Of a stretch of DNA of 64,000 bases, positions 1-62,648 are shown in pieces (positions within the stretch are counted from its first letter, which is position 1; each line of letters starts with the position of its first letter). The notes below the pieces were generated by a model. The model saw only the letters and a list, made by a program, of their open reading frames with translations, ran no database searches and was not told the origin of the DNA. The position numbers were made by a program, and so were the translations under genes. Origin of the DNA: Macrostomum lignano (lineage: Eukaryota); NCBI GenBank assembly GCA_002269645.1, contig NIVC01002820.1, positions 62,001-126,000 of the forward strand. The letters run 5' to 3'.

Positions 1-1060
1 GTTCTCCCTGGAGGGGAAAGTGACCTTGAAGCGTTGTTAAAGATTGAGGGAGCGCGGCTCAGTGTCCGAAAGGACAGCCGCACTCCCGCTCTTCTTCAGA
101 ATTTTAAGGCACAGGTCAGAGTGCGGCAGAAACTTGCGCTTCGTCATCGCTCTTTGCGGCTTGAAGCTAACGCCAGCCTCGATGAGCCGGCGGGTGGTTT
201 TAGCAGCCTCCCGGCGGAATAAGATGTGCAAGGGTGGGAGGCAGAGGAAGGCGTTGAGGCCGTCAAAAGGAGCAGAGAGCGGGCCTTTCATGATCATGCG
301 ACACACGTCCCTGCACCTTTTTAGGGCTTTGTGGCAGGTTTTAATCTGCAAGGCGCAGGTCCAGGGCAGGCCGGCGTAAGTAACGGCCGGCCGGACTATT
401 GCGGTATAGATCCACCAGAGCCGCTTCGGGGTTGGGCCCCATGTGGTGCCGACGGCTCTGCGCGACTGCGCAAGAATCGCGAGGGCTTTTTTGGTTTTGG
501 CCTGAACGTGGGTGGACCAGCTCAGCCTGTGGTCCAGCGTAACGCCGAGACACTTGGTTTGCTTACAGGATGGGATTTCCTCCCCGTAAAGCTTTAGTGG
601 GCGAATACGCCAATTAACTCTGCTGGTGAACATGATCGCGACAGTTTTGATCTCGGAGAGCCTGATACCACACCTGTCCGCCTATTATTCAGCAGAGCAA
701 ATAAAGTTTTGTAGAAGATCATAGGCTTATAGGCTTTCAGGTAATGGCCCGGATGTCACGGCTGTGACATCATCAGCATAACCGACCTTAAGGATGGGGT
801 CAAGATGGCTGTCCTGAAGGAGCTCATCGATGACCATGTTCCAGAGAGCTGGAGAGAGAACACCGCCTTGGGGGCTGCCTTTGCAGACGGTTACCGTCCG
901 TTGGTGCGCGGTGGCAGTACGGTGGCTGATCAAAGATCCACCGGGTAAGGTGCGAGTGGTTTCCCCTCTTGCACGTAAAGCTCTGTCGAAAGCCTCGAAG
1001 AGAACGTTGTCGAAGGCTCCAAGAAGACAGGAGGAAGACAGCAAAAGCGTTACCTAGAAC
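1..1060 (-). mobile_element. Decayed, 5'-truncated non-LTR retrotransposon (RT and thumb region; R1/LOA/I-group-like), running off the left window edge
   Basis: Minus-strand ORF 727-1044 has RT motifs GAFDNV, KGSPQGGVLSPALWNMVID and GYADDV. ORF 37-633 continues with KTVAIMFT, KCLGVTLDHRLSWSTHV and WIYTAIVRPAVTYA. Stops and frameshifts lie between the pieces. Clade assignment is by resemblance only. Confidence 0.88.
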
Positions 1061-3190: not shown

Positions 3191-5684
3191 ATGTCAGGAA
3201 AAAAAGAAACTTCTCACGGTTCTGACATCGGTGAGCATGAGTTTATGGCTTCTATTGAAGCAGAAAATGTCCAACTAATAGAACAAGCGCTTGCTGCAGG
3301 TATGAGGGTTGATCGACCAATACTTTATGACGGTGAACTTGCGACTCCAATGCACCTGGCTTGCGTGGTGGGAAACGAACAAATAGCTCAAATGCTCTTC
3401 GGCACGCCTGTATGTGACGTGAATTGCCAATTAAGTACCGGGGAGACGCCACTGTACGTCGCATCGCAGCGTGGCGACCAGAACCTGGTGGACGCCCTTA
3501 TCAAAGCACGCGCGAATGTTGGTCTTTCGGAAATCGATGGCAATACGCCTCTGTACGCTGCTTCGGAGAACGGCCACCATCGTGTGGTGAGGTCGCTGAT
3601 TAAGGCGGGTGCGGACGTTGATCTTCAAGGGTGCGACGGATGCACATCACTCTATATTGCATCACAGAATGGTCATAACCCAGTTGTGAAGATGCTTATA
3701 GAAGCTCAAGCCGATTTGAACCTTCAGAGTTTCGAGGGAGCTACACCATTGTACATCGCCTCGCAGTTTGGAGAGCATGAAGTTGTGGACTCGCTAATCA
3801 GGGCGCAGGCGGATGTTGACATTCTTGAAATCAGTGGCTGCTCACCGCTGTACATCTCCTCCCGACAAGGTCATTCGAAGGTGGTCGATTTTCTCATCAA
3901 GGCACAGGCCGACGTTCATCATGAACTAAGAAGTGGAGTATCATCACTTATGGCTGCCGCGCTTCAGGCCACAATAAGGTCGTAGACTCGCTAATTAAGG
4001 GAGGAGCTGTTATCGACCTTCAGCTCATAGAGGGCGCATCTGCTCTGCATGCTGCATCTGAGACAGGTCATGTTAGAGTGGCTGACTCACTAATCCGGGC
4101 AGATGCCAAAGTCGATCTTCAAAATGATCATGGAGCAACAGCTATCTATGTTGCCGCCCAGAACGGACATTTCGAAGTGGTTGACAGGCTCATTAAGGCT
4201 AAAGCAGATGTCAACTTACAAAAGCACGATAAAATGTCACCACTTTGCATTGCATCAATCCAAGGTCATTTTCGTGTAGTCCAACAGCTGCTACGATGCC
4301 CAAAAACTAACGTCGATATCCAAGCAGCGAAAGGCACTTCAGCACTATTTGCTGCATCCCAGTACGGTCACCACCGCGTAGTTAAAATGCTTGTAAATGC
4401 ACAGATAGATGTTAATCAGCCGGACGATTATAAGTGCACACCTCTTCACATCGCTTCTCAAAACGGTCACCATCTGGTGGTGAAATTTCTTATCAGAGCT
4501 CAAGCCGAAGTTGACGCTACAGACAAAGATGGAGCGTCGCCGCTCTATTACGCATCACAAAACGGCCACGAAAGAGTGGTGAGCTTGCTGATCAAAGCAC
4601 AAGCTGACGTCAATCTTTCGACAAACTCAGGCGGCTCATCTCTGAGCATTGAATCAGAGCAAAATCACTTCAAAGTGGTGCAACTTCTTATCAAAGCTCA
4701 GTCAGACGTTAATCTTCAGCGAGAAACAGGCTCGTCACCACTATACCTGGCCTGTCAGAATGGACATCATCAGATTGCCAGTTCACTTTTAAAGGCTGAG
4801 GCTGACGTAGATCTTCCAAACAGCGTTGGGGCTTCCCCGTTATACATCGCTTCACAAGACGGGCACCATGCAGCTGTGAGCTTACTCATTAAAGCAGGAG
4901 CTCACGTCAATACGCAATGCGACGATGGAATGTCGCCGCTATATGTTGCATCCCTGAATAATCATCTGCCCGTAGTTAAGTCGCTCATCAAAGCTCACGC
5001 AAACGTCAACATTAGAGAAGACGTCTTCGGTACAACGCCACTATACATTGCCTGTCAAAATGGTCATTACCAAATAGCTGAGACACTGATCAAAGCAAAA
5101 GCCGATATTGACTGCCAAGGAGAAAACGGAATGACACCCCTGTACATTGCAGCTTTGAGTGATCATATTCAAATAGTAGATTTGCTAATTAAGGCGCAAG
5201 CTGTTGTAGACTTGAGCAGTTCAGATAGCTGCACTCCTCTATTTGCCGCATGCTTTCAAGGTCACAGCAAAGTAGTCAGCCTTCTGGTTCGTGCGATGGC
5301 CGATGTCAATATTGTAAAAAGTGACGGCTGCACACCAGTCTTCATTGCTGCACAAAGTGGTCACAACCAGGTGGTGGATTTACTAATCAAGGCTCAAGCC
5401 GACCTGAACTGCCGTTGTATTGAAGGTTGCACGCCGATATTTGCTGCATCGTTAAATGGGCATCATAAAGTTGTGGATTCGCTTATTCAAGCACAAGCCG
5501 ACGTCAGCATTCCGCGAATGGACGGCCTGACGCCACTAAAGGCAGCGTCTCTGTTGAAGCACCATCAAGTGGTGACGCTGCTCACTTTAGCTGAATATCA
5601 CTTCGAGGAACTTGAGCTTTATTGGACGGAAGTAGAGCTGGACGATGACTCTGGATCCAGCGCGATGGATGCTAATGATCAAGA
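3191..5684 (+). CDS. Exon 1 of the ANK-cGLR gene: 23 tandem ankyrin repeats plus an acidic linker (ORFs 3191-3985 and 4078-5688, joined across a 1-nt frameshift)
   Basis: Repeated 33-aa GxTPLYIASQNGHxxVVxxLIKAxADVN consensus; 23 units counted. Restoring one G (CAG GGC CAC AAT AAG GTC GTA GAC) gives a canonical repeat, LQGHNKVVDSLIKGGAVID, that bridges the two ORFs. Confidence 0.93.
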
Positions 5685-7990
5685 GTGAGTGTCTCAGATC
5701 AAGTTTTTTATTATAAAAGTGCAAATACTTAAGTTCTCTTTAGTTTAATTTAAATGCTGAATCGTACGCATCGAATGCCAAATCTGTTCCCTAAATCTGT
5801 ATTTTAAGTAAATTTCTCAGTAGTATTGTCCCATTGTGGTATTAATGTAGTGCTTATGAGCCTACCGAATTTCTCAGTAGAAAAAATCTTTCCTTTGTTG
5901 CGCAACCGCTAGATTCATTAAATATTAAGGAAACGAAAGGGAACAAAACTAAAATTTTCTGGAATTTCAGAGTCCCCTCGACCGAAACTGAGCTGGGCGA
6001 GCAGTTGCACGCTGCCCTTCAGGCAGCTGCGGCTGACGTCCTTCAGGAGATTCTAAGAAATCGAATCGCGTACGAAGATATTTTTGTGGTTGGAAGCTTC
6101 TCCGAAGGATGGGGTAACAGTCTGACGAGTCTCGATGGGAAAACTGATATCGAGTCCGACATTGACGTGATGGAATTGGTTCGGGGCAGACTCTACCATC
6201 TCAAGCATCATTGCAGCTGTAAAGAAAGGAATTTGCATCCAGTTGAATACACAAATGGACACATTCTCTGCTCCGGATTCGGTAATGAAAATTTGGTTTT
6301 AGTCTATGCGATTGATCCAGTATACTGTACTAAAATGATATTTTTATCTATCTAGCTATGTGATCGATTTTTAAAAAAAATGCTAATGTTTTACTTTTTC
6401 TAAATCTTATTTTCAGCCACAAACCCAGCCAAGCCATTCCGGGGCTCCTCGCTGAAGCCGGCAGTGGATATAGTTGCAGCCTGCCGTCTCTATTGCTACC
6501 CTCCCATCGCGCCCCTTCTTCCGTCCCGGCGATCAGCTTCCAACATTGCTCACTCGATACTGCAGTCACTCGAGAGCGAATTGACAAACTCGCCTTGTCA
6601 CGTGGTGCATGCTGCACCACCGAAGAAATCGGGTAAGCAACTTCGCGTTAGCACAACCTTCCTTGAGAAGCGGCTACTCCGAAGTCTCAGCACGTTGCAG
6701 GGACAGCTATTCGTGACGCTCAAGTATCTGGTTAAAAAAGTCATCTGCCGTCGAGTGCAAGGCGTGAAGGCGTATCACGTGAAAACCATCACGTTTCGAA
6801 TGCTGGAGGAGACACCTTCTGACCAATGGAAGCCGGAAAATCTCGTGAGTCAAATCAGACGCTCATTGCAAATCTTGTCAAGCAGCGTCAAGAGCAGCTG
6901 CAGCGAAGATGAAGCTGCAACTAAGCCAGAAGACAAAATCATGAACCACTTCTTTCTGTGCGATGCTGCTCTGTACCTAAAAGGTGCAGACAAAAGCAGT
7001 TCTCAAGAAATATCTAGAGTGCTTCAATACGTTATGAAAAGACTTCCGGAGTTATTAATTAAATTTATCCATACATTGAGGCCCCTTACTAATACCGGAA
7101 CATTTCACTTCCATCCGTTTCTAATTCTGCCTCGAATGAAAGCAAATAAAGTTCGAATGTCTGCCGCCGTAGAATATCATGAGATTTACGATTTGGTGAG
7201 GGAGTCGCTTGTCCGCCTATCTCAGCGTGACTGCTGCAGTCCAGAGCTCAAGCAGTCGCTCTTGCAGCACATTAGCCAGCTTCCAGATTGTGCCCGCACG
7301 GCTCGAGAAACTCTTAAAGCACTAGCGTTTCTGAAGTTCAGAGACCGGGATGCAGCATTGAAGGTGCTTGCAGACTGCAGAGGGCACACAGTGAGCGAAG
7401 GCATCTCATGGCGGTCTGAAAGGTCCGCTGCTGAAGCTACAAAGGACTTGATGTGGCACTACCTGTGGAGCAACGACTCAGCCTGGAAATTCTGCTTTGA
7501 GTTTGATCAGCGTCCCGAGCTTGAGTTCCTGCCGGCAGTTTTATCCGACTGCTTCCCGCTGCGGTTGCAGAACTACGTCACTTATCACTATGTAAACTTT
7601 GACGCCTTCCTGCACAGTCTCCGATTGGAGTTAACGCCCCAAGATGAGGATGCTCATCGCTGGGTCAACACCGTTGCCCTTAGAGTTGGTGCGGACATCC
7701 AGGAGTTAGTCGTGGGTGCCAGTTTCTGCCGTGAACCCAAGCTGCTGATCGAGCCCTGGCGCGATTTGCAGGCGGCTCTCGCCGTAATTCCCAGACGTCT
7801 GGCTGACGAGGTGGCGCAGCGGTTGAAGGTACTGAAACACTCGTGTGAAAAATCAAAGCTTCTTCCCTCAACGAGAAGTCATTTTACTCATAAAATTCTC
7901 ATCCATTCATTGCAGGTGTTTGACAGAGGAGAGCAGGAAATGAGCAGCGATTCTGCTGATGCAACAGTGATGCATGTGCATGTACTTTAA
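3191..7990 (+). CDS. Ankyrin-repeat / Mab-21 (cGAS-like receptor, cGLR) nucleotidyltransferase fusion; exons 3191-5684, 5971-6281, 6417-7990; ~1459 aa once one G is restored at 3967-3968
   Basis: Intron 5685-5970 (GA|GTGAGT...TTTCAG|A) is phase 2 at both ends. Intron 6282-6416 (G|GTAATG...TGCTAAT...TTTCAG|CC) is phase 1 at both ends. The exon sum (2495+311+1574=4380 nt) is divisible by 3 and reads ...ANDQ-E-VPSTETEL... and ...CSGF-A-TNPAKPF...PAVDIV without stops. Confidence 0.85.
5971..7990 (+). CDS. Exons 2-3 of the ANK-cGLR gene: Mab-21/cGAS-type NTase fold plus a helical C-terminal extension
   Basis: VVGSFSEG (GS at 6092-6097), SDIDVM (Asp codons at 6158 and 6164), third acidic residue in PAVDIV (6467). 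Mab-21 C-lobe motifs: CHVV, LRVSTTFLEKRLL, LKYLVKK, AYHVKTITF (YHVKT also occurs in human cGAS), QWKPENL, MNHFFL. Confidence 0.88.
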
Positions 7991-9133
7991 AAAAGTTTGG
8001 TAAAAAAATTTGCTGCTTACCTACCGCTTGTTGAGTTTCGTTTGTAGTTCAAATTAGAATATTACTGGCATAATACGAGCTATTTTTATGCAGGTCAACA
8101 AGTCTGTATTATTTAAAAGATCTGTGGTTTTTGGTTGATTTTTGTGATAATTCAGTGCGCTAAATCCCAAAATGGTCTTCATTTTGCTTAATAAAGTCAA
8201 GTTTTATGGCAAATTTGATTTCAAGCTGAAGTTTGAAACGCTTTTTCGCTGATATTTCAAGCGCAAACAGGTCTTTAAAAAGAAACACGTGATTATAGTA
8301 TGAAAAAGTGCGTCTGTTTATAAATTACCGGTTCAGTGCACACAACCTCAAGCGAATTCGAAATGGTAGAGACTCTGATGGCTGCATTTGGCAGGCTTGT
8401 CTGCAATGTGAACAATAAGATTTTTAATTCCTATCTGGCGAGATTTCCTGAGAGTCTGGGCGCATGAGTGACTAACAACAGACCCAGCTTTTCACCTTAA
8501 GGCATCATAACGATAGAGGCCGAGAAAACAATTACACTGCCATAAGCCGACAATAAGTTGACAAAAATTATTTGATCTAAGATACACTGTAGATAGATTC
8601 AGAGTTCTATCTAAAGATGTGCTTGCGTTTGAAATACCCGTGGAAACAATAAAAATTCATCCAAATAAAATGTTTTATAACAAGATCTATAAGTATAAAA
8701 AACCTTCAGACCATGTATTGCTCTTAACGTGTGATATTTTTTTATCTGTGGATTTATTGGCAAAGTCTTATTGTTTTTTGTTTCCAAAATACAGAGTTTT
8801 TATAGGCGGTGTAAGCTGTACATGCACAGTCTCCAATATTAATCAATATAGTTATTTAAATTAACATGTGAACCTTCAGTCATGGAGTTATTTATGCATG
8901 ATTTTCAACAAGAATAAACTTAACAATGCTAATAAATTTCGCTTCAAATACTCGTAGTGACAAAGTAAATCAATCTCTCCCAAAAATCTATGTGACCAAT
9001 TAGTCTATGGGGCGAATCACGACTAAGACTTATATAGCTGCGATTAACCAGCTAGCCATCATTCCCAAATTCTTAATGCAGCACTCACATAACGCAGTAC
9101 TGCAAAGCAAAACAGTTGCTGCTCACACATAAC

Positions 9134-17409: not shown

Positions 17410-18110
17410 GATTCTATATTTTATTGTGCTATTCTATTCACATTCCACTATAGATTCTGCATTTTACTATGTTAGGCCTAGCCTATTCTATTCCAATTCT
17501 ACTATAGATTCTGCATTTTACTATGTTAGGCCTAGCTTATTCTATGTCAATTCTACTATAGATTCTGCATTTTACTATGTTAGGCCTAGCTTATTCTATC
17601 TCAATTCTACTATAGATTCTGCATTTTACTATGTTAGGCCTAGTCTATTCTATTCCAATTCTACTATAGATTCTGCATTTTACTATGTTAGGCCTAGCTT
17701 ATTCTATCTCAATTCTACTGTAGATTCTGCATTTTACTATGTTAGGCCTAGTCTATTCTATTCCAATTCTACTATAGATTCTGCATTTTACTATGTTAGG
17801 CCTAGTCTATTCTATTCCAATTCTACTATAGATTCTGCATTTTACTATGTTAGGCCTAGCTTATTCTATCTCAATTCTACTGTAGATTCTGCATTTTACT
17901 ATGTTAGGCCTAGCTTATTCTATCTCAATTCTACTGTAGATTCTGCATTTTACTATGTTAGGCCTAGCTTATTCTATCTCAATTCTACTGTAGATTCTGC
18001 ATTTTACTATGTTAGGCCTAGCTTATTCTATCTCAATTCTACTGTAGATTCTGCATTTTACTATGTTAGGCTTAGCCTATTCTATTCCAATTCTACTGTA
18101 GATTCTGCAA
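17410..18110. repeat. 54-bp minisatellite, ~12-13 copies
   Basis: Unit AATTCTACT(A/G)TAGATTCTGCATTTTACTATGTTAGGCCTAG(C/T)(T/C)TATTCTAT(CT/TC)C; produces the spurious 18-aa-periodic ORF 17426-18121. Confidence 0.95.
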
Positions 18111-18874: not shown

Positions 18875-21800
18875 ATGGATGATGCAGAGACAGAGAGAGT
18901 GCAAGTTTCCTTTGTGACTAAGGATTCTAAGTGAGTTTCATTCTGGTGTCTATCATAAAAATAAGTCTAACTGTACTGTACTAAAACAGAGTCGAAATGC
19001 TACTTGTTTACATGCTTTTAGATTTTCTGTTAGCAACTATCCGATCTATGTTCAACTGGACAGCGGCAGGGGGACCTCAGTGACATGGTTAAGAGTCTTC
19101 TGGCCTCAGATCATGGTGAGTCCTGATTGCACGGTGGTTTTTACTGCATTTCCAGTCTCCATCCCTCGTCAACAACTTCCCAGTCTCCGTCCCTCATCAA
19201 CTACTTCCCAGTCTCCGTCCCTCGTCAACAACTTCCCAGTCTCCGTCCCTCATCAACTACTTCCCAGTCTCCATCCCTCCAACTACTTCCCAGTCTCCAT
19301 CCCTCATCAACACTTTCCTGTCTCCGACCCTCATCAACACTTCCCAGTCTCCGTCCCTCATCAACTACTTCCCAGTCTCCGTCCCTCATCAACTACTTCC
19401 CAGTCTCCGTCCCTCATCAACTACTTCCCAGTCTCCATCCCTCATCAACACTTTCCAGTCTCCGACCCTCATCAACAACTTTCCAGTCTCCGTCCCTCAT
19501 CAACTACTTCCCAGTCTCCGTCCCTCATCAACACTTTCCAGTCTCCGACCCTCATCAACAATTTTCCAGTCTCCGTCCCTCATCAACAACTTTCCAGTCT
19601 CCGACCCTCATCAACTACTTCCCAGTCTCCGTCCCTCATCAACAACTTCCCAGTCTCCGTCCCTCATCAACTACTTCCCAGTCTCCGTCCCTCATCAACT
19701 ACTTCCCAGTCTCCATCCCTCATCAACACTTTCCAGTCTCCGACCCTCATCAACAACTTTCCAGTCTCCGTCCCTCATCAACTACTTCCCAGTCTCCGAC
19801 CCTCATCAACAACTTTCCAGTCTCCGTCCCTCATCAACTACTTCCCAGTCTGCGTCCCTCATCAACACTTTCCAGTCTCCGACCCTCATTAACACTTTCC
19901 AGTCTCCGACCCTCATCAACTACTTCCCAGTCTCCATCCCTCATCAACACTTTCCAGTCTCCGTCCCTCACCAACTTCTCCCCAGCCTCCACTCTCCATC
20001 CCTCATCAACACTTTCCAGTCTCCGACCCCCATCAACACTTTCCAGTCTCCGACCCTCATCAACAACTTCTCAATCTTCGTCCCTCATCAACTACTTCGC
20101 AATCTTCATCCCTCACCAAATTTTCCCGTCCCAATGCCTCATCAACAATTTCCTGTCGTCATTCTCGATCAAAACCACCCAGTTCCCATTCATTTGCTAG
20201 CAGTAATCCTCTCGGATCCCCTTCCTCTTGAATCTCGCAGCCTCCGAGGACGCAAACTCCGGTCCGACGCCAGCTGAGTTCGAATTTCTGGTGCAGGACG
20301 AGCTGCTGGTCGGCAGTCTTCGCCAGCTGGTCGAGGACCGCGGCCTGGCCATGGACGCCGTTCTTCGCGCCGAATATTTCCCCCGGCGCTCTGCTCCGGC
20401 GCCGTATGCCGAGCTGGCGCTGGGCAATCTGGTCAGCTGCGTGCGCGCCCGCGGCCGGCACCTCCTAGTCGGTTGCTATGACTACAGCGTAGCCATTGGC
20501 GACATTGACGGTGGCACCGAGCTCAGCCTGAAGCTGCCCGACGCTCACGAGAAAGAAGTGAAAGCCGTCGATTGGCTGACTACGACGACCGATGGTCAAG
20601 GCGACGCCGACAGTAGCTGCGAGTTTGTGTCGGCCGGGCACGACCAGGACTGCCGGATCTGGCGCTGGGAGGCCGGCGCTGCTCGCTGCCTGGCCGTGTG
20701 CAAGGGCCACGCATCCTCCGTGCTCTGCGCGGCCGGCAGTCCCGGCCCGGCGTTCGGCCATTTCGCATCCGGCAGCTTCGACGGCCAGGTGAAACTTTGG
20801 CGCTCCAGCGACGAGGGCACGGCGGCTGAGACAGGTGCGCTTTTGTGTGAACTTCTCTTTGCTTTGAGGTCTGCCCACCACCTGGATTATCTGATCCCAG
20901 TTGCTGTACCCCCCTCGGATCTTCAGTTGCTGGGCCACCTGTCATACTCTCGGATCCTCAGCTGCTGAGCCAGCCTTCCAGATCCTCAGCTGCTGGGCCA
21001 GCCTCTCAGATCCTCAGTTGCCGGGCCAGCCTCCCAGATCCTCAGCCTCAGTTGCCGGGCCAGCCTCCCAGATCCTCAGCCTCAGTTGCCGGGCCAGCCT
21101 CCCAGATCCTCAGCCTCAGTTGCCGGGCCAGCCTCCCAGATCCTCAGCCTCAGTTGCCGGGCCAGCCTCCCAGATCCTCAGCCTCAGTTGCCGGGCCAGC
21201 CTCCCAGATCCTCAGCCTCAGTTGCCGGGCCAGCCTCCCAGATCCTCAGCCTCAGTTGCCGGGCCAGCCTCCCAGATCCTCAGCCTCAGTTGCCGGGCCA
21301 GCCTCCCAGATCCTCAGCCTCAGTTGCCGGGCCAGCCTCCCAGATCCTCAGCATCAGTTGCCGGGCCAGCCTCCCAGATCCTCAGCCTCAGTTGCCGGGC
21401 CAGCCTCCCAGATTCTCAGTTGCTGGGCCAGCCTCCCAGATCCTCAGTTGCTGGACCAGCCTCCCAGAGTGTCAGTTGCTGGGCCAGCCTCCCAGATCCT
21501 CAGTTGCTGGGCCAGCCTCCCAGAGTGTCAGTTGCTGGGCCAGCCTCCCAGAGTGTCAGTTGCTGGACCAGCCTCCCAGATCCTGAGTTGCTGGGCCAGC
21601 CTCCCAGAGTGTCAGTTGCTGGGCCAGCCTCCCAGATCCTCAGTTGCTGGGCCAGCCTCCCAGAGTGTCAGTTGCTGGGCCAGCCTCCCAGAGTGTCAGT
21701 TGCTGGACCAGCCTCCCAGATCCTGAGTTGCTGGGCCAGCCTCCCAGAGTGTCAGTTGCTGGACCAGCCTCCCAGATCCTCAGTTGCTGGGATATTATTA

Positions 21801-22390
21801 GCGCTCACTAACAGTCGCTCTCCTCTCACCGACCAGGCGGCATCAGCCACCAGAGCAAGCACTCCGTCCCCAGCCGAGTGCCGTTGCGCACCCTGGCTGG
21901 GCATCGCGACGCTGTCCACGCCGTGGCCTACGCCGGCGCCAATCAGCTGTTCTCCGGCGGAGCCGACTGCAGCACCCGCCTGTGGGACGTGGAGGTTGGC
22001 GCCGAGTCCGCCCTGCTTAGGGCGCCGAGCGCGGTGCTCAGCCTGCACAGCCGGCCGGACGGCCGCGCCCTGCTAGCCGGTTGCGCGGGTCCGCAGCCCC
22101 GACTGTACGATCCCAGGAGCTCCGGGGACACCCTGATCGCGTGCTTCAACGCCCACGACACCTGGGTGTGCGGGGTGCGCTGGTGCCCCCAGCCCGGCAG
22201 TCAGCTGTTCGCCAGCTGCGGCTGCGACACCGTCGTTAAACTTTGGGACCTGCGCTGCACGAAAGCGCCGCTGTACGAACTGAGGGACCACAGCGGCATC
22301 GTCACCAGCGTTGACTGGTCGGAGACCGGCCACGTAGTGTCCGGCAGCGCGGACTGCACAGTGAAGATCTTCAAAGCTGATTTGGTCTGA
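18875..22390 (+). CDS. WDR12: Ribosome biogenesis protein WDR12/Ytm1 (NLE/UBL domain + WD40); exons 18875-18930, 19022-19115, 20241-20834, 21837-22390; ~432 aa; 1-nt deletion in the G5 run at ~19069-19073
   Basis: VQVSFVTK; DLSDMVKSLL (after restoring one G); EFEFLVQDELL...LRAEY; LLVGCYD; CKGHASSV; FASGSFDGQVKLW; RVPLRTLAGH; RLYDPRS; VVKLWDLRCTKAPLYEL; VTSVDWSETG..VSGSAD. These follow the motif order of human WDR12. Intron phases 2/1/1 are consistent. Confidence 0.92.
19148..20170. repeat. ~27-28-bp C-rich minisatellite filling WDR12 intron 2
   Basis: Unit TT(C/T)CCAGTCTCC(G/A)(T/A)CCCTCATCAAC(TA/AA/A)C, ~35 copies, decaying at the 3' end; lies between donor 19116 and acceptor 20240. Confidence 0.95.
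20905..21790. repeat. 28/34-bp minisatellite filling WDR12 intron 3
   Basis: 34-bp unit GCCGGGCCAGCCTCCCAGATCCTCAGCCTCAGTT, followed by 28-bp units GCTGG(G/A)CCAGCCTCCCAGA(TCC/GTG)TCAGTT; lies between donor 20835 and acceptor 21836. Confidence 0.95.
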
Positions 22391-60299: not shown

Positions 60300-62648
60300 C
60301 AGTAGAACTACCAAGGGGGGGGGGGGGAAATTTCCCCCCCCCCTGACAATTTTTTTTGCTGCGCCGGAACGGAGCAACTCAGGCACACGAAATTCAAGAA
60401 CACGGGCTAACTTTTTGTTGCGCACCTTCTCAAACAAGAATCAAGTCGCCAGCCCTCCGGACCGTCGAGATATTCGACGATTCTGCCAGAAGGTCGGATT
60501 TTTCCCATAAGCGCTAGTGTATTCAGTACACCCCTGTGCGCCAATCAGCACTGCGCCTCAGTGCAGCCTTGCCAAGTCTCCAAATTTCATCAGCACGTCG
60601 ACCACATGTGTCTGCATCAGTTCTGACTTCGTTGGTCACTAGCCTTTACCCAGGTGGAGCTTCTGGACCCTCAACAGCTGTGGCACCAGGTGACTATGGA
60701 CACCCTGATGCGGATTTCTCTAGTTTCGCCGATCAAGCCTCGACAGTGGGCAAGAATCAGCCGCCAGACATTCTCAGCTAGTCTCTCAAGCATTCCGTCA
60801 TCATCCGACGCCGTCGGCTCCTTCAACAGATTACACCAGGTGACTATGGACAGCCTGATAAGAATTTCTCTAGTTTCGCTGATCAAGCCTCGACAGTGGG
60901 CAAAAATCAACTGCTGGACATCCTCAGCTAGTCATTCAAGCATTCAGCCATCACCCCGACGCCGTCGGCACCTTCAAAGGTGGCACCAGGTGACTATGAA
61001 GATCCTGTTGGAACTATATCAGATTTTTCTTATCAAGCTTCAATAATGGGCAAATCTCACTGCCGGACATTCTCAGCTAGTTTCTCGAGCCTTCAGTCAT
61101 CATCCCGACGCCGTCGGCACCTTCAACAGATTACACCAGGTGACTATGGACACCCTGATGCTGATTTCTCTAGTTTCGCCGATCAAGCCTCGACAGTGGG
61201 CAAGCCTCAACTTCTGAAAACCCTCAGCTAGTCTCTCGAGCCTTCCGTCACCACCCCGACGCCGTCGGCACCTTCAACAGATTACACCAGGTGACTATGG
61301 ACATCCTGTTGCAAATATGTCAGATTTTTCTTATCAAGCTTCAATAATGGGCAAACCTCAACCCACGGACATTGTTAGCTAGTTTCTCGAGCCTTCCGTC
61401 ACCACCCCGACGCCGTCGGCACCTTCAACAGGTGGCACCAGGTGAGTAAGGACACCTGAGCGTGATTTTTCATCATGCTCTTAACATTTCTGAAGCTCTC
61501 AAATTTTTTAAGCACGGACATTGCTATTGTTAAGCTTGAATTCATGTTGCTGTATATGTATATTATTATTACACATACTTTTATACATACGAGCTACATA
61601 CATACTTTATTTGACAAGCTGTTTAGTTTATTGAACTATAATATAAGAACCCAATAATAATATAAATATACAGCAACATGAGTTCAAGCTTAACTATAGC
61701 AATGTCCGTGCTTAAAAAATTTTGAGAGCTTCAAAATGTTAAGCGCATGATGAAAAATCACGCTCAGGTGTCCTTACTCACCTGGTGCCACCTGTTGAAG
61801 GTGCCGACGGCGTCGGGATGATGACTGAAGGCTCGAGAAACTAGCTGAGAATGTCCGGCAGTGGAGATTTGCCCATTATTGAAGCTTGATAAGAAAAATC
61901 TGATATAGTTCCAACAGGATCTTCATAGTCACCTGGTGCCACCTTTTGAAGGTGCCGACGGCGTCGGGGTGATGGCTGAATGCTTGAATGACTAGCTGAG
62001 GATGTTCAGCAGTTGATTTTTGCCCACTGTCGAGGCTTGATCAGCGAAACTAGAGAAATTCTTATCAGGCTGTCCATAGTCACCTGGTGTAATCTGTTGA
62101 AGGAGCCGACGGCGTCGGGATGATGACGGAATGCTTGAGAGACTAGCTGAGAATGTCTGGCGGCTGATTCTTGCCCACTGTCGAGGCTTGATCGGCGAAA
62201 CTAGAGAAATCCGCATCAGGGTGTCCATAGTCACCTGGTGCCACAGCTGTTGAGGGTCCAGAAGCTCCACCTGGGTGAAGGCTAGTGACCAACGAAGTCA
62301 GAACTGATGCAGACACATGTGGTCGACGTGCTGATGAAATTTGGAGACTTGGCAAGGCTGCACTGAGGCGCAGTGCTGATTGGCGCACAGGGGTGTACTG
62401 AATACACTAGCGCTTATGGGAAAAATCCGACCTTCTGGCAGAATCGCCGAATATCTCGACGGTCCGGAGGGCTGGCGACTTGATTCTTGTTTGAGAAGGT
62501 GCGCAACAAAAAGTTAGCCCGTGTTCTTGAATTTCGTGTGCCTGCGTTGCTCCGTTCCGGCGCAGCAAAAAAATTGTCAGGGGGGGGGAAATTTTTCCCC
62601 CCCTCTTGGTAGTTCGACGGGCGGAAAAATGGCTTGGTATTCCTACTG
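60300..62648. mobile_element. Foldback-type non-autonomous DNA transposon, 2349 bp, TTAA target-site duplication
   Basis: The empty site in the paralog (ACTA-TTAA-CGATTC) becomes ACTA-TTAA-[CAGTAG...CTACTG]-TTAA-CGATTC. Inverted arms ~60300-61570 and ~61653-62648 flank an ~80-bp AT-rich spacer. Confidence 0.9.
60684..61442 (+). repeat. ~150-bp tandem repeats within the foldback arms (5 units on the left; 3 inverted units at ~61780-62240)
   Basis: CACCAGGTGA recurs at 60684, 60834, 60984, 61134, 61285 and 61436. Each unit contains the hairpin CCGAC-GCC-GTCGG. Confidence 0.9.

Follow-up and report, generated by a model that had tools for sequence, protein, structure and literature searches.

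A stretch of 64,000 nucleotides (nt) from the flatworm Macrostomum lignano (assembly GCA_002269645.1, contig NIVC01002820.1, positions 62,001 to 126,000 of the forward strand; hereafter the window) contains, at 3191–7990 on the plus strand, a gene in which a long ankyrin-repeat array precedes a cGAS-like receptor (cGLR) enzyme core. An earlier note on this DNA, made from the letters alone, had proposed such a fusion. The identification is supported: it holds because fold search, profile-profile comparison, motif conservation, and an exon structure common to the paralogues all agree on it, and the catalytic triad is complete. We read the gene as one paralogue of an M. lignano-specific expansion of ankyrin–cGLR genes, with the domains, fold and mechanism set out below, and we put the probability of this reading at roughly 0.6.

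Enzyme core and homology

The nucleotidyltransferase (NTase) had been recognised by a GS motif, a D-x-D motif, a third Asp within PAVDIV, and a YHVKT segment. All four lie where they had been placed: GS at 6092–6097, D-I-D at 6158–6166, the third Asp at 6467–6469, and YHVKT from 6773. One M. lignano protein model of 598 amino acids (aa), P0001, comes from a different assembly of this locus and differs from our window model only at one residue and by a 29-aa gap. In its numbering the active site consists of G41-S42, D63-I-D65 and D121. These residues are conserved across the family, as judged from an alignment of 16 sequences, with D121 invariant, and family members down to 29% identity keep the GS, the D-x-D and the third Asp.

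Searched as a single sequence with phmmer, the window protein reached cGAS only at E ~0.06. An hmmsearch of PDB sequences returned cGAS at E = 3e-6 and MAB21L1 at E = 0.69. With the family profile, an exhaustive search of 1.84 billion representatives gave 1406 matches at E ≤ 1e-3. In all eight of the distant matches scanned, Mab-21 and Mab-21_C both score above their Pfam cut-offs, and Pfam-passing Mab-21 proteins are matched by the family profile at E values between 1e-14 and 1e-19. When the flatworm family was compared with Pfam-verified Mab-21 proteins by hhalign, the two aligned at 99.9% (E = 6e-34) over 298 columns. The alignment pairs GS with GS, SDIDV with SDxD, and AVDxVxA..YP with DxVxA..WP.

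Structure prediction points in the same direction. An AlphaFold2 model computed from the family alignment has a predicted local distance difference test score (pLDDT) of 80.8 and a predicted template-modelling score (pTM) of 0.79. Foldseek comparison of this model with the PDB, a check that the earlier note had suggested, returned cGAS or the oyster protein Cv-cGLR1 in each of the best 50 rows, with E values of 7e-8 to 6e-6 and 350–400 aligned columns.

Vertebrate cGAS has the same overall fold (template-modelling score ~0.5, normalised to the target, over those 350–400 columns) and likewise has the catalytic GS, the acidic pair and the third Asp; its SYHVKT aligns with the YHVKT of the window protein. 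Identity between the two is only ~15%, and a regular-expression search for the cGAS-type zinc thumb, H-x5-CC-x6-C, found the motif absent. Where cGAS has a disordered basic N-terminus, the window protein instead carries an acidic ankyrin region of 831 aa, and it ends in an extra tail of 260 aa.

The closest named relatives outside the flatworms are bivalve cGLRs, represented here by one named distant profile match, a clam protein (Mercenaria mercenaria XP_053407825), and by Cv-cGLR1 (PDB 8gjw/8gjy). These share homologous Mab-21 NTase and Mab-21_C lobes with the flatworm family (the hhalign value given above, and Foldseek E = 2e-7 to 8gjw), as well as the GS..EG..SDxD and D-x-V-x-A..[WY]P motifs, and on each side the genes belong to a large lineage-specific expansion. 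The sampled bivalve cGLRs differ in having C-terminal extensions (TPR in two, trypsin-like in one) and not an N-terminal ankyrin array. The flatworm family, for its part, has a loop between GS and D-x-D that exceeds that of the bivalve cGLRs compared by ~8–10 residues, and a C-terminal domain of its own that lacks a fold match. A third comparison, with NLR/STAND receptors, is one of logic only, in that a long variable repeat array sits on a signalling module. Pfam scans of both halves of the protein showed only ankyrin families and Mab-21_C, and hence neither a NACHT/NB-ARC ATPase nor another oligomerisation module, so the likeness is analogy and not homology.

Several Cys and His residues in the core are also nearly invariant. 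A H-x4-C-x-C...G-H stretch (6197–6262, plus strand) follows the second strand of the NTase lobe and precedes the third, and further such residues are C129 and C164-H165. These positions could together form a metal site.

Gene structure, ankyrin array and family

A mechanical list of open reading frames (ORFs) breaks the locus into four plus-strand pieces (3191–3985, 4078–5688, 6005–6355 and 6464–7990). In our model these become an ankyrin exon and the exons of the cGLR. Exon 1 (3191–5684) starts at the ATG and encodes a 49-aa N-terminal cap, the ankyrin repeats from ~3338 onward and an acidic linker, ending in phase 2. It rests on the ORFs, a Pfam Ank_2 match, the repeat count and a donor site, GTGAGT, at 5685; its N-terminus is similar to those of the paralogues P0007, P0013 and P0019. 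Intron 1 (5685–5970; 286 nt, GTGAGT..CAG, G+C content 0.32) separates the ankyrin exon from the NTase. Exon 2 (5971–6281) encodes the N-terminal helix and first strands of the NTase lobe, including GS, D-I-D and the H-x4-C-x-C...G-H stretch, as indicated by the family alignment, the hhalign pairing with Mab-21 proteins at GS and SDxD, and strands at 37–40 and 63–77 of the AlphaFold2 model. Intron 2 (6282–6416; 135 nt, GTAATG..CAG, G+C content 0.24) follows '...CSGF' in phase 1. The first part of exon 3 (6417–7126) holds the rest of the core, comprising the third Asp, the site of a Cys-to-Tyr substitution considered below, and the helical Mab-21_C lobe with YHVKT.

Two phase-matched introns had been proposed, and they stand. 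The joins 5684 to 5971 and 6281 to 6417 use consensus splice sites with GT-AG ends, and the phase is consistent, with the frame kept across both. Junction 1 ('...DQE|VPSTETE') is found in P0002, the annotated model of a homeologue that is near-identical where in frame and that spans the ankyrin-to-NTase junction as predicted. Junction 2 ('...CSGF|ATNPAK') is found in P0001. Two GenBank paralogues, P0013 and P0071, were taken as genomic loci. The RNA-annotated P0013 has both introns at equivalent positions, intron 2 exactly so, and follows the same plan: a single ankyrin exon, an intron ~10 aa ahead of a 'QLH' helix, an exon running to '...SGF', a phase-1 intron, and a terminal exon. P0071 has additional introns and also has one after the equivalent of 'SGF'. 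Since the GenBank annotation of the Mlig_3_7 assembly is built on a genome-guided RNA-seq transcriptome (PMC5730564), the fused architecture is transcript-supported for the paralogues.

The predicted length of the product, ~1459 aa in a single frame, did not survive. The three exons of the two-intron model total 4379 nt, a length not divisible by 3, because the assembled frame breaks at 3967/3968 and meets a premature TAG at 3983–3985. Adding one G at 3967/3968 yields a single frame of 4380 nt. A probable third intron had also been overlooked. It spans 7829–7915 (87 nt, GTACTG..TTGCAG), between the second part of exon 3 (7127–7828) and the last exon (7916–7990, with the stop codon TAA at 7988–7990). 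This segment is in frame and has no stop codon, and its retention would add 29 aa; it is spliced out in P0001, whose 29-aa gap corresponds to it. Its G+C content is 0.37, compared to 0.51 in the exon and 0.24–0.32 in introns 1 and 2, and the introns of P0071, computed from its exon coordinates, are 66–127 nt long. As 7829–7915 is likely spliced out, the product with the missing base restored is likely ~1430 aa rather than 1459. An AATAAA at 8190–8195 on the plus strand, ~200 nt 3' of the stop codon, reads as a candidate polyadenylation signal.

The count of 23 ankyrin repeats given in the earlier note was borne out. With the base restored, 23 units of 33–34 aa each can be counted, and Pfam Ank_2 matches the array at E = 1.5e-167. 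The paralogues inspected vary in repeat number, some having only a few repeats and others well over 20. Within the 23 repeats, variation is greatest at positions 2, 10–11 and 30–33, which we take to be the canonical binding surface of ankyrin repeats; the pattern is general to ankyrins and non-specific.

Downstream of the core, 7127–7987 encodes a C-terminal domain of ~260 aa that is mostly helical and conserved across the paralogues. Modelled alone, it has a pLDDT of 82. Its best match among PDB folds has E = 0.5 and a vague TPR or helical-repeat resemblance, which we count as no match, and no Pfam family was found for it. In the parts of the literature and supplements that were searched, no description of this domain was found.

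The gene is one of dozens of its kind in M. lignano, and its named close relatives are all paralogues from this species, most of them with a long N-terminal array. A search of a protein collection with the 628-aa C-terminal part of the product gave 37 matches, and every one with an organism name came from Macrostomum lignano. One caveat here is that this word-indexed search misses most distant relatives (37 matches versus the 1406 of the exhaustive profile search). By the latter, the family comprises 89 representatives at E ≤ 1e-30, and among the best 39 with a complete domain start, ~28 carry 240–2100 aa upstream of the cGLR domain. The closest paralogues of the window gene are 50–60% identical to it, and a scan of the window for further family copies found none. 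Two models from M. lignano or an unnamed organism, P0057 (1346 aa) and P0003 (997 aa), contain two tandem cGLR domains, and P0057 is listed with two matched stretches in the exhaustive profile search. Such models may reflect genuine fusions of several cGLRs, of the kind seen in OAS2/3, or adjacent genes that were merged.

The window copy and its surroundings

Several observations weigh against our reading of the locus, and they are of three kinds. The first is the Pfam result for the window protein alone. Of the Pfam matches that the earlier note had expected, that to the ankyrin families was obtained, while Mab-21_C (PF20266) scored 22.6 bits, below its cut-off of 24.1, and the Mab-21 NTase model (PF03281) gave no match. 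The second concerns function and phylogeny. There is no family member with a product, a ligand or a downstream receptor on record, and none of the five M. lignano members cloned in a previous survey is labelled among its 15 selected active enzymes (PMC9980059). Planarians are without recognisable cGAS/cGLR and STING (PMC13563047), and the four cestode entries in the part of Table S5 available to us have zero cGLRs and zero STINGs (PMC9980059). The third concerns this copy in particular. The reading frame is broken in the assembled sequence, as described above. At the C129 position, where all family members carry an invariant Cys, the window copy has a Tyr (TAT, 6491–6493). The N-terminal helix lacks 12 aa ('SALxxSGFxxSR') at 5996–6010 on the plus strand. 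No transcript-based GenBank protein for the locus was among the matches, leaving expression of this copy unproven, and a look-up of exact products in public assemblies (ORF 3191–3985, ORF 6464–7990 and P0001) returned no record.

The Pfam shortfall we ascribe to divergence beyond the reach of single-sequence hidden Markov models. Mab-21_C is matched by 16 of the 16 family members (best E = 1.4e-7), PF03281 by none of them. The helix stretch missing at 5996–6010 is carried by the other members of the alignment that cover this region; at the same point the homeologue model P0002 has a different sequence of 13 aa, at odds with the consensus of the paralogues.

The frame break falls in ankyrin repeat 7, on the plus strand. 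In a three-frame translation the local DNA reads CTT CAG|GCC ACA, with CAG|GCC in place of the expected CAG GGC CAC (Q-G-H), that is, a GG run for GGG. As assembled, the sequence translates to 264 aa only. ORFs 3191–3985 and 4078–5688 are the successive halves of repeat 7 in different frames, with no intron between them. That an intron causes the break was considered and rejected, because the flanking repeats are in exact 33-aa register once the single base is added. A search with the N-terminal 428 aa for a near-identical protein across the break found nothing above 46% identity, so no annotated protein lies over this site, and by the exact-product look-ups no further assembly does either.

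The window copy may be a null allele or a duplicate in decay, or else the missing base may reflect a homopolymer error of the assembly. Were the deletion real, translation would stop after 6.5 ankyrin repeats, the NTase would not be made, and function would sit in the near-identical homeologue and the other paralogues. We regard this as a serious possibility, somewhat short of even odds. Beyond the break itself, it draws on the Cys-to-Tyr change, a G-to-A transition at an invariant site and atypical of indel-type assembly error; on the ankyrin region, where, of seven differences from P0002, three take the window copy further from the consensus of the repeats; and on the lack of a transcript-based GenBank protein. 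Redundant copies are moreover common in M. lignano, given that blocks duplicated at ≥95% identity make up 180 Mb of its DV1 assembly (PMC5730564). Set against these points are the GG-versus-GGG nature of the break and the state of the remainder: the rest of the 4.4-kb coding sequence is open, its splice sites are intact and its catalytic residues are retained. Differences in homopolymer length are the commonest and most typical kind of error in long-read assemblies. In addition, P0001 carries Cys at the invariant position.

Elsewhere in the window, a degraded reverse-transcriptase fragment (37–1044, minus strand; RVT_1 E = 1.8e-10, '...YADD' visible, split over two ORFs) is probably what remains of a truncated non-LTR (long terminal repeat) retrotransposon ~2 kb upstream of the ankyrin–cGLR gene. 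A WD40-repeat gene occupies 20228–22390 on the plus strand, with exons at 20228–20968 (E = 2.5e-11) and 21878–22390 (E = 1.2e-25) that flank a GC-rich (0.63) 28/68-bp minisatellite at 20956–21783. Two further minisatellites lie at 17430–18109 (54 bp × 12.6 copies, 95% matches) and 19149–20157 (28/111 bp × ~35 copies, 88% matches). A 33-kb satellite array fills 22680–55811, with a 51-bp unit in ~650 copies, 99% matches, a uniform G+C content of 0.39 and a GC skew of –0.2. Finally, there are two blocks of 151/300-bp tandem repeats at 60684–61468 and 61764–62257. When reverse-complemented, the consensus of the first block resembles that of the second, so the pair may represent an inverted repeat or what is left of a transposon.

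Sensing, signalling and what the family may offer

The earlier note had left open whether this architecture was already catalogued for the lineage. It is, both generally and for M. lignano: Li et al. described in 2023 some cGLRs that carry TPR or ankyrin modules as fusions (Fig. 1C and S2A), listed M. lignano accessions (PAA...) with Ank_2 domains in Table S2, and included M. lignano entries 89–93 among the cloned constructs of Table S3 (PMC9980059). The cloned members are PAA86972.1, PAA45980.1, PAA57558.1, PAA93208.1 and PAA68676.1. They come from the same species and family as the window gene, and their printed parts are 30–38% identical to its cGLR domain. The ankyrin–cGLRs of that survey resemble the window gene in having N-terminal Ank_2 domains followed by the cGLR and in the motif pattern GS..EGWxN..SDIDV. 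Compared to that set, the window gene falls in an unsampled subclade, its 23-repeat array is among the longer ones, and its copy has a frameshift and an invariant-Cys substitution in the assembly. A search of the literature available to us for later functional work on ankyrin–cGLR fusions found none.

By analogy with characterised cGLRs (PMC9980059), the resting enzyme would be held inactive until a ligand switches it on, whereupon it would condense nucleoside triphosphates into a second messenger, a cyclic or linear oligonucleotide. The ankyrin array, possibly together with the C-terminal domain, would serve as the regulatory or ligand-recognition module, replacing or gating the nucleic-acid groove. 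From the domain architecture it is plausible that the ankyrin solenoid acts as a protein-ligand sensor gating the enzyme.

Alternatively, the cGLR core may still sense nucleic acid, with the ankyrin array serving for localisation, scaffolding or autoinhibition and not for recognition of a protein ligand. We consider this possible but doubtful. The cGLR ligands identified so far are all double-stranded (ds) DNA or dsRNA, and Li et al. tie more positive predicted charge to nucleic-acid-sensing cGLRs (PMC9980059). In the window copy the core is basic, with an isoelectric point (pI) of 9.0, and the array is acidic (pI 5.5). Nucleic-acid binding would be compatible with a pI of 9.0, and the pairing of a basic core with an acidic array could fit either retained nucleic-acid binding or charge-based autoinhibition. 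Across the family, however, the pI of the core spans 6.2–9.0, with a median of 8.0; a basic surface is thus not shared by the family at large, and charge is uninformative on nucleic-acid sensing. The missing zinc thumb speaks against this alternative, as do the five cloned constructs, which were not labelled active even though the reactions of the screen received poly I:C and ISD45 dsDNA as indicated (PMC9980059). As far as the printed sequences allow a start to be placed, which is the case for four of the constructs, these begin downstream of the ankyrin array (PMC9980059). In vitro, most cGLRs of the 2023 screen seemed to be inactive, probably since the ligands that activate them had not been identified (PMC9980059).

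A more far-reaching version of the sensor idea would have the family, with its ankyrin arrays, cGLR cores and C-terminal domains, be a set of diversified sensors for proteins or other non-nucleic-acid ligands, recognised through the array or the C-terminal domain. A receptor distinct from canonical STING would read the nucleotide signal, in a phylum in which the other members sampled, planarians and cestodes, have lost cGAS/cGLR and STING. This we think unlikely, though worth stating. A literature search for STING in Macrostomum found nothing, and Table S5 does not include M. lignano (PMC9980059).

Very unlikely, finally, is a non-enzymatic Mab-21-like protein that makes no second messenger and whose NTase fold serves for structure or binding, as has been suggested for MAB21L1/2. 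The lack of recorded activity in any family member, the unmatched Pfam NTase model and the longer GS-to-DxD loop would suit it. Against it, the catalytic motifs (GS, D-x-D, third Asp) persist in paralogues with as little as 29% identity, which points to selection on catalysis; cGAS is matched far better than MAB21L1 (E = 3e-6 versus 0.69); and Mab21L1/2/3 are said to be without a predicted functional active site (PMC9980059).

For the biology of M. lignano, the window locus itself adds little, as both the architecture and the species' family are published and this copy is possibly broken. The remaining interest lies in the family as a whole: an unusually large expansion of ankyrin–cGLR genes, in a phylum otherwise mostly without cGLRs, with an unclassified C-terminal domain and with a ligand and a receptor to be sought. 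Ankyrin-fused cGLRs are obvious candidates for sensing non-nucleic-acid ligands. Because transgenesis is established in M. lignano (PMC5730564), this flatworm would offer a practical system in which to test the role of the repeat array.

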